A DNA stretch of 64,000 nucleotides, from IMG/VR virus record IMGVR_UViG_3300032268_000986, positions 62,001 to 126,000 of that record, one strand, 5' to 3'. Below the pieces are notes generated by a model, which was not told where the DNA came from, ran no database searches, and saw only the letters and a program-made list of their open reading frames with translations. This document shows, piece by piece, positions 34,001-62,130 of the stretch (position 1 is its first letter; every line of letters begins with the position of its first letter). The position numbers and the translations under genes were made by a program.

Positions 34001-34089
34001 TGGAGGAAGGCTAGTAGAATCGAACTCTATGCGCTTTCGCACACCTTCTGTTTTCAAGACAGAGTCAGGCCCAGCCTGATTAACCTTCC
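34001..34089 (-). tRNA. tRNA-Ser(TGA), atypical fold
   Basis: TCTGT-CTTGAAA-ACAGA, long variable arm, 5-bp D stem, U73. Confidence 0.75.
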
Positions 34090-34531: not shown

Positions 34532-34560
34532 ATTATACAGCCGACAATCGCAGTTGTCAA
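34532..34560 (-). promoter_or_regulatory. Consensus sigma70 promoter TTGACA-N17-TATAAT inside tRNA array
   Basis: Perfect hexamers and 17-nt spacer; the same at 35497-35525 and 47247-47275. Confidence 0.85.
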
Positions 34561-35488: not shown

Positions 35489-35533
35489 ATAATACAATTA
35501 TATAGTCAACAGGTGTTGCTGTCAACTAAAACT

Positions 35534-35869: not shown

Positions 35870-36484
35870 ATGAAAATCAATTTTACCACTGCATCACCTG
35901 CCATCTATTATCTTGACACTGTGGAACCCCCGCAACCTTGGCCCACCTTGTTACACGAATTGCAACAGTTATTATGGCAACAGGAACCAACCATTGGCGG
36001 TCAAGATCACTTTGCTGTGAGTTGCCTGGGCGCACATACCATACCATACCATTCTGCACCGCATAAATTTCAACAACACTTTGTTGCAGACACGTTCAAA
36101 CAACAAGTGCTAGATCAGCTGTTTGACAATGAAGAATTCATGATGCAGTGGGCCAACCCTGAACGCAAACATGTCAATGACATAACTGTGTTATGTGTGA
36201 ATTGGGTTGCAACCCCGCCAAGATATCGCAATCATCCTTGGCATGTTGACAGTCGCTGTCAAATGGCACATGGCATGATCTATATCACCGAGCAAGACAA
36301 TGTTTTACACAGCACTTGGTTCGATACTGGGCGTAACGGACATTTGTTGCGCATTCCGTCGGCACCGGGGCAAGGTTGGATGGTAGTAAACACTGACCAA
36401 GCCAGACACTGTGCTATGAACGACACTGACCGCACACGTTACAGTCTCAAATTCAGTCTTGAGCTAAAAGTGAGAAAATTTTAA
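35870..36484 (+). CDS. Putative 2OG-Fe(II) oxygenase, antisense to the tRNA array
   Basis: WHVD, GMIY, distal H, R.SL. Confidence 0.65.
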   Translation: MKINFTTASPAIYYLDTVEPPQPWPTLLHELQQLLWQQEPTIGGQDHFAVSCLGAHTIPYHSAPHKFQQHFVADTFKQQVLDQLFDNEEFMMQWANPERKHVNDITVLCVNWVATPPRYRNHPWHVDSRCQMAHGMIYITEQDNVLHSTWFDTGRNGHLLRIPSAPGQGWMVVNTDQARHCAMNDTDRTRYSLKFSLELKVRKF

Positions 36485-36687: not shown

Positions 36688-36720
36688 AAAAACCCTGGAG
36701 TTTTTAGTTCCAGGGTCTTT
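36688..36720 (-). terminator. Intrinsic terminator (putative attenuator)
   Basis: ACCCTGGA/TCCAGGGT stem followed by U tract. Confidence 0.75.
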
Positions 36721-36748
36721 TGAATTTTTCTTGAGTCAGTTAATCTAG

Positions 36749-36883
36749 TTAACCATCCCAACCTTCAAAGGACCCCGACACTCCTGGAATACTATTCAAG
36801 CCCGCAAAACCGCGTGACCAGACAGACGCTGTCTGGAGCATTGTGGATTTTGTCAGCAGTGAATGATTCGTTGTGTTCATCAT
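36749..36883 (-). CDS. 44-aa putative leader peptide MMNTTNHSLLTKSTMLQTASVWSRGFAGLNSIPGVSGSFEGWDG
   Basis: Starts about 7 nt after TTGACA-N17-TACAAT (36891-36919); its 3' end is complementary to the terminator 5' arm. Confidence 0.65.
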   Translation of the reverse strand: MMNTTNHSLLTKSTMLQTASVWSRGFAGLNSIPGVSGSFEGWDG

Positions 36884-36936
36884 AAGTCCTATTGTATAGT
36901 ATTTAGCAATTGTTGTCAACCACTAAAGTGTTTTAT

Positions 36937-37401: not shown

Positions 37402-37623
37402 TTTGAGAGCCTACGCCGCTTTTATCGTAGATTTATTCAGGACTTACCGGCCGCCTAGCCTGACCTCGAGCACGATGGATATCACTTGGGCTTCGTCCAG
37501 CGTAGTCTCCTTTACAGACCTCCGCAGTTGCCCGCGGGTGGGAGTTGAACCCATTTGCCTTTTACTGCTTTGGTCCTTCGAAGAAACCTAGACAGCGTGA
37601 CTTCACTTGCTGACACTCTCAAA
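37402..37623 (-). ncRNA. Candidate structured ncRNA (~220 nt)
   Basis: TTTGAGAG/CTCTCAAA ends; T-loop-like TGGG-TTCAACT-CCCA; several hairpins. Confidence 0.55.
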
Positions 37624-37856: not shown

Positions 37857-37860
37857 ACAA

Positions 37861-38062
37861 AAATGCTCTGCATCCCCCGGCGGTAATTGTAGTGCATCAT
37901 CTCTTGGATTTCTCCGCAATTCTCACACACCTTCCACCCGCTTCCCGACAGGGACCGTTATCGCATTGCCAGCGGCCTTTCGGTAAGAAGACTACCACCC
38001 TTGGCTATCACACCACTTCTCATCTTGCGGGTCACAATATCTGCTGATTAGGCAGAACGTTT
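37861..38062 (-). ncRNA. Candidate structured ncRNA (~200 nt)
   Basis: Terminal stem; long-range ACCCGC/GCGGGT pairing; GNRA-like loops. Confidence 0.55.
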
Positions 38063-38300: not shown

Positions 38301-38532
38301 CTATATGCAACCACATTAGGGAAGTTCTTGACACGCATCACCAACTTGCATCAAGACCTCATTACGGGCCTAGTAGTTCCGCCGCCTTCCTGGAGTTTGG
38401 TGTAGCCCTATCCCTCACGCTCGATGGTGTCTCGCGCTACTCTTAGGCCCTCCTGCTTCATGGGTATCCGGCTCGAATCAGCCTTTTGTTCACCCCTAAC
38501 GGACTAGGTAACCCTAATGTGTTTGCATATAG
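38301..38532 (-). ncRNA. Candidate stem-closed ncRNA (~230 nt)
   Basis: 20/21-bp terminal inverted repeat. Confidence 0.55.
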
Positions 38533-38584: not shown

Positions 38585-38762
38585 TCTGGAACTAGTTGTG
38601 ATCAACTATTTCCTAACTAGCCACTAGTATAACATCATCTGCCATACCGGTCAACTTGTTTTGTAAAAGCCCCGCCTTGTTGCAGGGTCTTTACAAACTC
38701 AGCTGTCTTTCCCGACTTGTTTCTATTGTAACACTCTACTCAATTTTGGTCTAGCACTAAAA

Positions 38763-38790
38763 GAAAAACCCGCATCATGTGCGGGTCTTT
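38763..38790 (-). terminator. Intrinsic terminator (putative attenuator)
   Basis: ACCCGCA-CATGA-TGCGGGT then TTTTCTTTT. Confidence 0.8.
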
Positions 38791-38817
38791 GGTTGTTAGT
38801 ACTTTCTACTTAGGGTG

Positions 38818-38916
38818 TTACACCCGCTGTAACACCTGTACCGTTGACGATGGCTCGCAATCGCTCTCATAGGCTATTGCTGTCCAATAATTCAAGGTGA
38901 TTAGTTGTGTCATCAT
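38818..38916 (-). CDS. 32-aa putative leader peptide MMTQLITLNYWTAIAYESDCEPSSTVQVLQRV
   Basis: ATG about 7 nt after TAGACA-N17-TATAAT (38923-51); terminator follows. Confidence 0.62.
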   Translation of the reverse strand: MMTQLITLNYWTAIAYESDCEPSSTVQVLQRV

Positions 38917-38980
38917 AGTGTTATTATATATGCCTGTGCAATAAATGTCTATACTTTTCTGGGTCTTTTTGTCCATTTTG

Positions 38981-40057
38981 TCAGAGATCCAACAACACAT
39001 GATGCTCGCTCACGCTGCCGATGTAGTCACACCGAACTTGGCTCTGGTTGAACCAACCAGGGTGCTGGTGTTGCAATAGGTCACAGTAGGCTTCAAACTT
39101 TGCCAATGTGGTTTGACCCTGGGAACTCAGCGCACAGTTATTGATCAACAGCAGTTCCTTGCGGTCAAATTGCCAGTCATGTTGATGTGACACTGTGCCA
39201 TTGATTCTTGGAAACCCCCACTTTTTATCCAGGCAGTTTCCTGGTGTGGGGAACCCCAAGGCAGCTTTGATGTCAAGCCCCTGCACTCCCTGTTGCGCAA
39301 GATCATGTAGGCCGTATGCATACGCAAACGCTAGGTTAGGGTTGCGTTGGTCACAGAAAAAGTGAATCATGCGAGGAGTCATGAAATTCAAATTGAACCG
39401 GTTGTCCATCCAGTAAAATTTGTTGCCATCTAACACTGGCATGGCAGCACCACCAACATTGACATAATTATCTTGTTGTAGATGTGGATAACACTCAATG
39501 GCCTGCAACGGGTTAGTGGTGCATGGGCGCAGTGTTTTGTGTCGCAACCACCGATGTTCTACATCTTCCATGTACCAAGCATAGTGCTCGGGCAAGATAT
39601 CATAGTACACCACTTGAGCTCGACTGCGGTATTGTTGCAGAGTCTTGGCCAGCACGGACCTAAAGGGAAACACATCAATTTCTATATTGACATACTCATC
39701 CACAGCACCAGGGAATCTACGATACACTGCAATTTCATCAACATCTGCCCCAGTTTCTAAAAATGCCATCAGGGCAGCATGACTGTCCATGCCACCGCTG
39801 TACCACAGGCGTATGCGACTGTGATGATCACGTATGAGTTGGGCCTGATCCAAGCACAGTTGCCAAAAAGTTTTTTGCGGTCGTAATCCGGCTAGGCTGT
39901 GGGACCAAACACGAAACCCCGGTGCGGCATGCCCCAGTTCTTGAGCTTTTCTCAGCGCATCAATCTTGCTGTGTCCATGCCATGTGCTCACATGGTAATG
40001 AGGTCCTGTGTAGCCCTGCCCTGGATCAATCTTTTCTGTGACTTTTACTGGTGTCAT
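38981..40057 (-). CDS. PP-loop (adenine nucleotide alpha-hydrolase-like) protein
   Basis: RLWYSGGMDS. Confidence 0.6.
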   Translation of the reverse strand: MTPVKVTEKIDPGQGYTGPHYHVSTWHGHSKIDALRKAQELGHAAPGFRVWSHSLAGLRPQKTFWQLCLDQAQLIRDHHSRIRLWYSGGMDSHAALMAFLETGADVDEIAVYRRFPGAVDEYVNIEIDVFPFRSVLAKTLQQYRSRAQVVYYDILPEHYAWYMEDVEHRWLRHKTLRPCTTNPLQAIECYPHLQQDNYVNVGGAAMPVLDGNKFYWMDNRFNLNFMTPRMIHFFCDQRNPNLAFAYAYGLHDLAQQGVQGLDIKAALGFPTPGNCLDKKWGFPRINGTVSHQHDWQFDRKELLLINNCALSSQGQTTLAKFEAYCDLLQHQHPGWFNQSQVRCDYIGSVSEHHVLLDL

Positions 40058-41355
40058 GAGTATAGTTGAATCAATCGATTCGTTATGCCATTGAGTTGAT
40101 TTTCTAACAGCAGCACCAGCACCAAGGGCATGAAATCCACTCGACGAGCTGTAATCCAGCCCACTGCACCACTGGCTGCAAACACCAGCATGTAGTACAG
40201 AGTCTGATCGCTACGCCAGCCCTGATACATCACAGTGGCAGTCAACAGCACAATCAACACTGATACTATGGCATTGTAGTACTGTTGGAACCAGCTCAGT
40301 AATTGTTTTACCACTGACGAGCACACCCAGGCCACAACAGCACATCCGATCAGTAAACTTGCAGTTACCAGGCCCACCATGTTCCAGTCAAGATTGGTGG
40401 CACGCCACCCATGACTGGCCAAGATATCCAATATCACCAACTCACTGGGCTGTACCGCTAGGCCCAACAACACAAACGGAATCAGGCTTGAAACCTGGCT
40501 GGCATTGTTGGCAGCTTCTGCAGCCGTGAGACGAGACAGACTGTCTGTGAGATGCGGTTGTTTGCGAAATCTTGATTCCACAGAGTGTGCCAAATTGGAT
40601 GTGATGATACCGCCCACGTATGGCACAAGCCCACACACAAATCCCACTGCACTGCCGCGCAGTGCAGATAGCCAGGCAAACGATCTTTGCGTGTGACCAT
40701 TGATGTCAATGGGCATGCCCATGGGGGATTGCTGGTGCTTGATCAACAGCATGGTGGGCACTGCATACACTCCCAGTATCACCGGGGTAATTGGTATGCC
40801 TCCGGCCAAGTACACATTGCCCAGAGTCAAAAAGTCCTGACCAGTCTGCATGTTGTGTCCTACTGCGCCTATAATCCAGCCCAGTGCAATCAACCCAAGA
40901 TTTATCATGGCTCTGTTGCCGGGCCATGCAGTGACAAATGTCAGTGTGACAAACAACAACACTGCCATGACTTCGGTTCTAAACAGCATGGGCCAGGCCT
41001 GTCCTTGGTGCAAGCAAATCAACATTGCGGAGAGACTCGCTGCCATGCCAATCAAGCTGGCTCGGGCAGTGTCTTTCAATGCTTGCTGGATAGCATTGTG
41101 ACCAATAATGATATTGCGTTCACGCAAGGCAGGTGCAGATGTTACTTCACCTAGAGTGCCAAAGCACAGCGCAGCCACTGATCCTGAAAAGTCTCGAGCC
41201 GAAATCATCACAGCGTAAAATGCAATCAACACAGCCGGACTCATCATGTTCAGCATGGGATACAGTATCAACAACATAAACACCGGACCCAGACCAGGCA
41301 TGAGCCCTACCAAGATTCCAATGGCTGGTGCCAACAGCAACAACAGCAGTTCCAT
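40054..41355 (-). CDS. Tripartite tricarboxylate transporter TctA-like permease
   Basis: GILVGLMPGLG, GFVCGLVPYVG, AAEAANNA; polytopic membrane protein. Confidence 0.82.
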   Translation of the reverse strand: MELLLLLLAPAIGILVGLMPGLGPVFMLLILYPMLNMMSPAVLIAFYAVMISARDFSGSVAALCFGTLGEVTSAPALRERNIIIGHNAIQQALKDTARASLIGMAASLSAMLICLHQGQAWPMLFRTEVMAVLLFVTLTFVTAWPGNRAMINLGLIALGWIIGAVGHNMQTGQDFLTLGNVYLAGGIPITPVILGVYAVPTMLLIKHQQSPMGMPIDINGHTQRSFAWLSALRGSAVGFVCGLVPYVGGIITSNLAHSVESRFRKQPHLTDSLSRLTAAEAANNASQVSSLIPFVLLGLAVQPSELVILDILASHGWRATNLDWNMVGLVTASLLIGCAVVAWVCSSVVKQLLSWFQQYYNAIVSVLIVLLTATVMYQGWRSDQTLYYMLVFAASGAVGWITARRVDFMPLVLVLLLENQLNGITNRLIQLYS

Positions 41356-42998: not shown

Positions 42999-43070
42999 TG
43001 TTTTTCCTTATAAAAGTAAGGGCTTTTGACCCTGAGCAATTATATATGCAACTGCATGTTGCAGTCAAGA

Positions 43071-43097
43071 AGAAAGGTCAGATTAACTGACCTTTCT
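43071..43097 (-). terminator. Hairpin at the end of the tmRNA coding piece
   Basis: AGAAAGGTCAG/CTGACCTTTCT. Confidence 0.6.
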
Positions 43098-43500
43098 GGT
43101 GGTTTCTGTTACGAGGTATTTCCTACCCTAAGCAGTGTTTAGGCTGCTAATGCGAACTGTGAGTCGTTTGCGTTTACTTTTTTGCTTGATTAACGGTCAT
43201 CGCCTACCGTGCTGTCCACTCTGTTACTTGTTGCCCTGTCGAAACTATGCAGGCCCATCATAAAGAAACTTCTTCAAATCTAGATGCCAAAAGCACAATA
43301 CGCAAACCGGCATCTGTTTGAATTACTACTCCATTACCCATGGTATAGACAATATCATAGTCTTTGCCAATTGTTAGTTCCTTATGCACAGCTTTAACAT
43401 CAGGTAATGATTTAAGTATCATAAACTTCCTTATGGTGGACCTGGGGGGATTCGCACCCCCGTCCAGAACACTGTTCTCATCACTTCATACAGCAATAAC
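43098..43500 (-). ncRNA. ssrA: Circularly permuted (two-piece) tmRNA, tag ANDSQFALAA
   Basis: Acceptor piece ending CAGGTCCACCA (43434) precedes 5' piece GGGCCTG...TTTCGAC (starts 43256); G3:U70; tag frame 43139-43171; outer ends approximate. Confidence 0.92.
43258..43422 (-). CDS. 54-aa ORF inside the tmRNA intervening segment
   Basis: SD AAGGA; MILKSLPDVKAVHKELTIGKDYDIVYTMGNGVVIQTDAGLRIVLLASRFEEVSL. Confidence 0.6.
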   Translation of the reverse strand: MILKSLPDVKAVHKELTIGKDYDIVYTMGNGVVIQTDAGLRIVLLASRFEEVSL

Positions 43501-43502
43501 TT

Positions 43503-43661
43503 TTAGATCTGCACCACGGTCCATTTGGTTGTAAATGGTTTGCCTTCGGCCTTGTGTTTCAGTATCTTCGCAAACTCTTTTTCACGGAGTTTGGCAATGG
43601 TTTCTGTATCGTGGTCGAAGCAAGCCTTGTACAAACGAGAAACCAATTTCTTTTGTTTCAT
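43503..43661 (-). CDS. 52-aa basic hypothetical protein
   Basis: SD aaggagg; [14 protein letters not shown]... Confidence 0.6.
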
Positions 43662-47238: not shown

Positions 47239-47261
47239 AAGTGTGTATTATACTGGAAAAA

Positions 47262-47642
47262 TTATTTAGTGTCAACAGTGCCGTCGGCCAAGTGGTCCTG
47301 CTTGATTTCTCGCACGGGATGGCCCAGGATAGTGGCAATGGAGTTCTTGTAGGCTATACGCCGATTGTTGAAATCTCTAATGGCAATGGCTCTGCGGCCA
47401 ATTTCTTGCAGGCTCAGCATTTGCTCAACGCCAGATTTCAGTTGCCATTCTAGATCCCAGATGGCATGGTGGATATCGGTCATGGCCTGGATGTCGGCAT
47501 CCAGCTCGGGACTGTGTGGTAATTGTTGATATTTGTCCTCGTACCAGTCCAATTCAATTTGATTGGCTCCATTGGTACGGGCATGTTTGACTCGTGCAAT
47601 GCACAAGCGATCGATCAATTCAAGTACAGGTAAAAATTCCAT
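47262..47642 (-). CDS. Hypothetical protein
   Basis: ELIDRL...IWDLE...N.RR..K..I pattern. Confidence 0.7.
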   Translation of the reverse strand: MEFLPVLELIDRLCIARVKHARTNGANQIELDWYEDKYQQLPHSPELDADIQAMTDIHHAIWDLEWQLKSGVEQMLSLQEIGRRAIAIRDFNNRRIAYKNSIATILGHPVREIKQDHLADGTVDTK

Positions 47643-61705: not shown

Positions 61706-62130
61706 GATACTTCGCTCCTGCCATCTCCTATATCTCGAGTGCTTACATATATGCCAGATTGACGCATGGCCTGTTCTTGTTCCCAGGTTTCCATCACTAC
61801 GTGTCTGCACACATTTTGGAACCACCGATCCACAATGTCTGAATCAGTGTCTGTGGGCTTCATCATGTAACCGGACTTGACCAGGCGAGCAACAAACAAT
61901 TCATTCCAGTCTAACTCAAAAGCACCCTGATGTAAATTTTCGGGATCCACATCAATTCTCAGTACCTGCACCCAAGGGTCTCCACGTTCGGTGGCCAATT
62001 GTTTTTCAGTCTTGACTGGATCTCGGGGCTTCTTGACAGGAGGTGCCGGCTGCGCATCAGGTTGGGGAGCAGCAGGTGCAGGGTTTACGTTGGCATTCTT
62101 ACCAAACCATCCCTTGATTGATTCAAACAT
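61702..62130 (-). CDS. Hypothetical phage protein
   Basis: GAFELDWN...VDRWF. Confidence 0.7.
   Translation of the reverse strand: MFESIKGWFGKNANVNPAPAAPQPDAQPAPPVKKPRDPVKTEKQLATERGDPWVQVLRIDVDPENLHQGAFELDWNELFVARLVKSGYMMKPTDTDSDIVDRWFQNVCRHVVMETWEQEQAMRQSGIYVSTRDIGDGRSEVS

Follow-up and report, generated by a model that had tools for sequence, protein, structure and literature searches.

Background

Ribosome-mediated transcription attenuators are described from amino acid operons, with the trpL, hisL, leuL and pheL leaders and the multivalent thrL and ilvGMEDA leaders as examples. A promoter-proximal short ORF holds codons for the sensed amino acids and is followed by an intrinsic terminator, while an alternative pairing takes the 5' arm of the terminator and is hidden by a ribosome that reaches the ORF end. 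The regulated genes are biosynthetic genes. In mycobacteria, leaderless polycysteine short ORFs form a Cys 'ribulon' (bioRxiv 10.1101/834739): translation slowed at a run of Cys codons controls downstream genes of Cys metabolism, in that the stalled ribosome blocks RNA structures that otherwise hide the downstream ribosome-binding site. T-box riboswitches also adjust the read-through of a terminator to the state of a particular tRNA pool, but they bind the uncharged tRNA directly, have no ORF and control aminoacyl-tRNA synthetase and amino acid genes. In Sinorhizobium meliloti, the released attenuator RNA rnTrpL is reported to act in trans (PMC6614838). Large phages often carry many tRNA genes, but their regulation is largely unknown. 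Full-text searches revealed no report of a leader-peptide attenuation of tRNA genes, neither in phages nor in cells, and a Phe-rich leader at the E. coli tRNA-Phe gene pheV was not present in the MG1655 sequence.

We analysed a stretch of 64,000 nucleotides, positions 62,001 to 126,000 of the IMG/VR record IMGVR_UViG_3300032268_000986, referred to as the window. The window is part of a 342,865-bp virus record estimated 99% complete, a jumbo phage. It carries 33 tRNA genes and a permuted tmRNA, all on the minus strand. A preliminary description had proposed an attenuator with a YESDCE codon cluster ahead of tRNA genes for Glu, Tyr, Asp and Cys, of the same design as a second unit nearby. As in the classical leaders, a short ORF with putative sensor codons is followed by an intrinsic terminator and an alternative pairing. 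In contrast to these leaders, the downstream genes are tRNA genes, the mRNA is leaderless, the codons occur once or twice and not in runs, promoters follow the terminator, and without translation the predicted default is read-through rather than super-attenuation. In contrast to the mycobacterial short ORFs, the codons are mixed and the output structure is a transcription terminator. No T-box match was found in Rfam even at E values up to 5. Among the Rfam leader families, Trp_leader (RF00513) scored 20.9 bits at 38760-38843 against a cut-off of 41, and the matches to Thr_leader (RF00506) and His_leader (RF00514), also below their cut-offs, fell on the second unit.

Results and discussion

All elements of the preliminary description were confirmed on the minus strand (Table 1). 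A cluster of Y, E, D and C within six residues occurs in 0.5% of the 32-residue open stretches of this genome, the strict form with five of six residues in the set in 0.08%. The ORF is probably translated. In a genome-wide scan, 31 of 124 sigma-70-like promoters had an ATG 4-9 nt after the -10, and at least 17 of these open ORFs of 50-642 codons, thus the leaderless start is the design of many long genes in this phage. Longer ORFs of 60 or 52 amino acids starting upstream were rejected, because the upstream part behaves as a promoter, with conserved hexamers and a variable spacer, and the ATG at 39000 is absent in relatives.

Table 1. Features of the leader region and the tRNA cluster in the window. 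L008 and L026 are related metagenome or phage contigs.
Feature	Position	Strand	Sequence or composition	Observation in relatives
Promoter P1	38951-38923	minus	TAGACA (38951-38946), 17-nt spacer, TATAAT (38928-38923); 11 of 12 matches	Hexamers kept (TTGACT, TTGACA; TATAAT, TATACT), spacer varies
Leaderless leader ORF	38916-38818	minus	ATGATG begins at 38916, 6 nt after the -10; 32 codons plus TAA; peptide MMTQLITLNYWTAIAYESDCEPSSTVQVLQRV	25-35 codons in all 26 variants
Proposed regulatory codons 16-21	38871-38854	minus	TAT GAG AGC GAT TGC GAG (Y E S D C E)	Core Y-E-x-D conserved in the family
Predicted small hairpin H1	38880-38857	minus	GCAAT / ATTGC, enclosing the Y-E-S codons	One compensatory G-C to A-T change in L008
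Hairpin H2	38836-38814	minus	GGTGTTACA (38836-38828), loop GCGGG, TGTAACACC (38822-38814); 9 bp, stop codon in the 3' arm	Different stem in L026 (ACTGC / GCAGT), loop still carries GGCGGGT
Antiterminator box	38827-38822	minus	GCGGGT, in and next to the loop of H2, complementary to ACCCGC in the 5' arm of T1	
Intrinsic terminator T1	38790-38759	minus	AAAG-ACCCGCA, loop CATGA, TGCGGGT, then TTTTCTTTT; 7-bp GC-rich stem plus U tract	Compensatory stem changes: GC to UA in 4 sequences, CG to GC in 3
Promoter P2	38753-38725	minus	TAGACC, 17-nt spacer, TACAAT	Hexamers invariant, spacer varies
Second hairpin (T2-like)	38697-38660	minus	TTTGTAAAG...CTTTTACAAA, around CCCTGC / GCGGGG	T-A to C-G compensatory change in L008
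Promoter P3	38654-38626	minus	TTGACC, 17-nt spacer, TATACT	Hexamers invariant, spacer varies
Stem-bounded structured RNA element	38530-38301	minus	Ends 3 nt before the 5' end of tRNA-Glu; positions 38312-38524 appear as a closed circle in RNA assemblies	Insert inside the conserved stem varies
tRNA-Glu(TTC)	38297-38222	minus		
tRNA-Tyr(GTA)	38148-38063	minus		
tRNA-Asp(GTC)	37702-37627	minus		
tRNA-Cys(GCA)	37305-37228	minus		
tRNA-Met(CAT)	37202-37127	minus		
Second unit, promoter	36919-36891			Unit conserved in contigs L010 and L011
Second unit, ORF			44 codons	
Second unit, terminator	36716-36692			

Nucleotide and tblastn searches of cultured-phage records yielded only tRNA matches. Exact leader patterns found nothing in IMG/VR, the neighbouring 358-aa protein as a pattern query also found nothing, and a scan of bacterial genomes for the structured RNA element was empty. 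Relatives were obtained from the contigs of protein database matches to the 358-aa protein (L002-L009), from one metagenome scan and from patterns of the RNA element, the T2/P3 region and T1. Thirty-nine loci carried 26 distinct leader sequences, and three more loci with two further leader types were seen by eye. All are phage or metagenome contigs. Each has a consensus-like promoter, an ATG 5-7 nt after the -10, a short ORF and T1. tRNA-Glu is the first tRNA in all but two of the loci where tRNAs were recovered (L078 starts with Asp, L097 with two Leu). Glu and Asp are present in all but one short locus, and Tyr in most. The unit is far better conserved than its neighbours: in L008 the flanking protein is 49% identical, but 353 nt of the leader region are 87.5% identical. 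The L008 ORF keeps 32 codons and YESDCE with synonymous changes, and the change from TAA to TGA preserves both the stop codon and the hairpin pair. One lineage (L017 type), however, has the same T1, P2, P3 and tRNA module behind an ordinary 296-aa porin-like gene, without a leader.

Of the Y, E, D and C codons named in the preliminary description, Y, E and D are conserved in the homologous leaders. The N-terminal half and the C-terminus of the peptide drift, whereas a core (A)-Y-E-x-D remains. Several lineages permute the core but keep the composition (YESDCE in the window, YERDC, CEREYD, AYLEED, AYREED, SEREDD, ERGED). Y, E and D make up 44% of the residues in the cluster window and 3% outside of it. 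Tyr is encoded by TAT in 30 of 31 cases, Asp by GAT in 27 of 28 and Glu by GAG in 42 of 49, while long ORFs of this genome use 54% TAT, 52% GAT and only 26% GAG. These are the wobble codons of the tRNA-Tyr(GTA), tRNA-Asp(GTC) and tRNA-Glu(TTC) of the phage, and slowly read codons may be expected in a sensor. The middle codon varies freely (AGC, CGT, CGC, CAC, CAT), so the block is not simply a frozen nucleotide sequence. Yet TAT, GAG and GAT are so uniform that conservation by descent cannot be fully separated from codon selection, and the counts are not independent trials, since the family members are related. The Ser codon (AGC) of the window is just this variable middle codon. The Cys position is variable (C, G, R, Y or W), shows no codon bias and does not track tRNA-Cys, which is often not in the cluster. 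Contig L019 lacks a Tyr codon but has tRNA-Tyr, and L045 has a Tyr codon with no tRNA-Tyr among the next three tRNAs.

In the predicted structures the end of the ORF always pairs with the 5' side of T1, at -13 to -24 kcal/mol and in three sequence solutions. Most leaders ('GLC type') end in GGGTCTTTG, which pairs with CAAAGACCC, the A-tract plus the first bases of the terminator arm. A second short helix holds the stop codon and differs in sequence between types (UGUA:UACA, GAUGU:GCAUC, AAGU:ACUU). The type of the window and L026 present GCGGGU in a hairpin loop, and contigs L041 and L058 use GCGGG plus GATATTTG:CAAATATC. RNAalifold on 19 GLC-type leaders gave the antiterminator as consensus when the 3' arm of T1 was left out, and T1, with compensatory pairs, when it was included. 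The antiterminator core is invariant, thus it has no covariation of its own.

Each leader was folded with 28 nt masked for a ribosome at each codon (assumed footprint -12 to +15 nt), with trpL of E. coli MG1655 as positive control. Before the 3' arm of the terminator is made, the 5' arm of the trpL terminator was paired upstream with a probability of 0.74 with the ribosome at the Trp codons and 0.02 at the stop codon. The leader of the window gave 0.78 at the cluster and 0.04 at the stop codon (0.72-0.86 with the P-site at codons 14-25, 0.01-0.05 at codons 27-32). This contrast was reached by 0.75% of 400 dinucleotide shuffles (p = 0.0075) and was the highest among the 12 natural ORF-terminator pairs of the genome whose stop codon lies at least 16 nt before the terminator arm. 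With the whole terminator present, the terminator wins in both trpL and the window. The decision would therefore be kinetic, as is presumably the case for trp. The family average was 0.72 and 0.37 before the 3' arm is made, and 0.42 and 0.01 with the full terminator. In GLC-type leaders the antiterminator competes even at equilibrium, with 0.2-0.84 at the cluster and 0.00-0.06 at the stop codon. In 18 of 19 GLC-type leaders, the first A-site codon at which the ribosome begins to mask the antiterminator is the D codon or the next one. The conserved block thus ends exactly where a waiting ribosome would start to interfere, the geometry expected of regulatory codons, though this depends on the assumed footprint. 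The subtype of the window is the weakest version. Its antiterminator has only 6 bp in a 5-nt hairpin loop and loses to the terminator at equilibrium (0.00), and the cluster lies 6-11 codons before the masking boundary. A ribosome stalled at codons 16-21 does not reach H2, hence kinetic control, an opening of H2 or an H-type pseudoknot would be needed.

We interpret the region, on sequence and folding evidence alone, as a leader-peptide attenuator at the head of a phage tRNA cluster. The transcript would start from P1 at or next to the AUG, and a ribosome would translate the 32 codons while the RNA polymerase moves on. With smooth decoding, the ribosome would reach the last codons and the stop codon, open H2 and cover GCGGGU, T1 would fold, and the transcript would end as a roughly 150-nt RNA. 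If the ribosome is held at the TAT, GAG or GAT codons, perhaps also TGC, because the matching charged tRNAs are scarce, the box would stay free and pair with ACCCGC, so T1 could not form and the polymerase would run on into the tRNA genes. A promoter lies directly after T1 in every relative examined, therefore the attenuator can only add to the basal transcription of the tRNAs. No RNA run was listed for the leader, and it had zero depth in four metatranscriptomes. This is not informative, since the mRNAs of the phage were also undetected there. The codon-specific mechanism is regarded as slightly more likely than not, while it is likely that translation of the mini-ORF governs the read-through of T1 in some way.

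The second unit does not share this logic, in contrast to the preliminary description. Its antiterminator is not hidden by a ribosome at the stop codon, and a convergent 204-aa gene lies between it and tRNA-Trp. Ahead of other tRNA sub-clusters no further leader units were found.

Among the alternatives, a general translation-coupled switch without codon specificity survives best, but is considered unlikely. The mini-ORF would only report whether ribosomes keep pace with the polymerase, and any loss of translation capacity would free the antiterminator, the Y/E/D codons being inherited sequence rather than sensors. In every variant the antiterminator is free with no ribosome or with a ribosome anywhere upstream, and masked only near the ORF end. 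In the subtype of the window the position does not single out codons 16-21. However, this explains neither why Y, E and D are the conserved residues and match the tRNA types that recur downstream, nor the use of wobble codons, nor the end of the block at the masking boundary in the GLC-type leaders. Slightly more doubtful is an independent small gene for a 32-aa peptide, with T1 as its terminator insulating it from P2 and P3. Small leaderless ORFs are common in this phage, a promoter always follows T1, T1 ends an ordinary gene in the L017 type, and a motif AYExD...GLC is conserved. But much of the peptide is poorly conserved, the motif is permuted in several lineages, 'GLC' is encoded by the box that pairs with T1, and the codon choice is constrained beyond amino acid identity. 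A peptide function predicts neither the pairing of the ORF end with the terminator nor the stop codon inside it, and there were no Pfam hits, for either small ORF, and no homologues in cultured-phage records. A stand-alone small regulatory RNA of about 150 nt, possibly dual-function and acting in trans by the single-stranded linker between H2 and T1, has in its favour the own promoter, the strong terminator, a fold with z = -4.0, a 47-nt invariant block of linker plus T1 among the near relatives and the precedent of rnTrpL, but is very unlikely as the linker is not conserved in the wider family and a non-coding RNA does not need the conserved ORF, start codon at +1 and stop codon placement, although this reading does not exclude the attenuator.

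Conclusions

The attenuator interpretation is supported for Tyr, Glu and Asp, but not for Cys or Ser. Known is the attenuation logic of the amino acid operons; new would be its application to tRNA genes. About 28 natural variants with three antiterminator solutions form the family. It is about as likely as not that phage tRNA genes are under homeostatic feedback through a leaderless, multivalent leader peptide, conserved across a clade of freshwater jumbo phages, whose sensor codons UAU, GAG and GAU are read by the very tRNAs encoded downstream. This would be the first ribosome-mediated attenuator known to control tRNA genes. If the element works as proposed, leader-peptide attenuation closes a direct loop from tRNA supply to tRNA synthesis, such sensing can run on leaderless mRNAs and mixed single codons, and phages monitor specific decoding capacities of the infected cell. 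It could let the phage sense the depletion of particular tRNAs during infection, for example through host shut-off or tRNA-cleaving defences.

RNA elements between the tRNA genes

The spacers between the tRNA genes were found as abundant RNA in four freshwater, river and estuary metatranscriptomes, reaching depths of up to 273, 600 and 1790, while the flanking phage genes had none. For the inner part of the spacer ahead of tRNA-Glu, two runs yielded contigs whose ends overlap by exactly 30 nt (k-1) and join the 3' end back to the 5' end through 4-6 other nucleotides. This corresponds to a closed cycle of about 214-218 nt, meaning a circular RNA or tandem copies. The element is located inside a conserved stem, TATATGYAAACAC / GTGTTTNCATATAG, that ends 3 nt before the 5' end of tRNA-Glu, and the size of the insert varies from about 40 to 300 nt among relatives. 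No Rfam match was obtained for this element; it is present in 6 other IMG/VR jumbo-phage contigs and in no bacterial genome scanned.

Rfam calls a tRNA-Sec just above its cut-off (48 bits against 47) at a place where ARAGORN calls nothing in the window, whereas at what appears to be the corresponding place in the related contig L011 ARAGORN calls tRNA-Ser(TGA). The permuted (two-piece) tmRNA gene encodes the tag peptide ANDSQFALAA, while relatives carry ANDEKFLMAA.

Positions of the additional features (window coordinates unless a contig is named)
Feature	Position	Strand	Remark
Spacer element ahead of tRNA-Glu	38301-38530	minus	abundant RNA
Inner part of this element	38312-38524		closed cycle in two runs
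Spacer between tRNA genes	37858-38051		abundant RNA
Spacer between tRNA genes	37470-37566		abundant RNA
Attenuator 2	36692-36919	minus	promoter TTGACA, 17-nt spacer, TACAAT; ATGATG; 44-codon ORF; bidirectional terminator
Gene following attenuator 2	35870-36484	plus	convergent, 204 aa
Genes upstream of the leader	38981-41355	minus	TctA-family transporter subunit (433 aa) and 358-aa protein
Porin-like ORF	L017 6839-7729		296 aa; homologous loci L018, L020-L022
tRNA-Sec (Rfam)	34005-34089	minus	
tmRNA	43048-43526	minus	permuted, two-piece
Promoter of tRNA-Gly (34523)	34532-34560		TTGACA, 17-nt spacer, TATAAT
Promoter of tRNA-Asn (35488)	35497-35525		TTGACA, 17-nt spacer, TATAAT
Promoter of tRNA-Met (47238)	47247-47275		TTGACA, 17-nt spacer, TATAAT

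Variation of the leader units and their surroundings

The first 39 residues encoded by the second unit, attenuator 2 of the preliminary description, contain no Y, E, D or C. This is the complement of unit 1, the leader ahead of tRNA-Glu, and matches the amino acids served by the large tRNA array beyond attenuator 2. Its antiterminator, GGGGTCCTTTGAA, resembles the box of the GLC-type leaders, the most frequent type in the family of unit 1, however it is not masked by a ribosome at the stop codon. Within the family of unit 1, variable residues next to the Y-E-x-D core sometimes match the extra tRNAs of the same cluster. The lineages are related and these amino acids are common, thus the following matches are only a lead: YEL-AYESDC types are followed by Glu, Tyr, Asp and Leu, the YEI type in contig L037 by a cluster that includes Ile, AAVAYEHD by a cluster that includes Ala, and AYLEED by Leu, Leu, Glu, Tyr and Asp.

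In one lineage, represented by contig L017 and homologous loci, the leader ahead of the terminator T1 is replaced by a porin-like ORF with a signal-peptide-like N-terminus and a C-terminal ...GGLVVQF. The last codons of this ORF contain GGCGGGT, which is complementary to the terminator arm ACCCGCC of that lineage. Of the genes upstream of the leader in the window, the TctA-family transporter subunit was identified by Pfam (E = 5.5e-45), while the 358-aa protein had no Pfam match, but contains an SGGMDS motif. A relative, contig L009, has a TctC gene at the corresponding place.

Transcription starts of tRNA and protein genes

Throughout the phage genome, perfect promoters are located so close to some tRNA genes, for example those of Gly, Asn and Met, that transcription should start at or within 1-2 nt of the mature 5' end. 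Likewise, many protein genes start with an ATG at +1. Both mRNAs and tRNAs appear to be leaderless in this phage.
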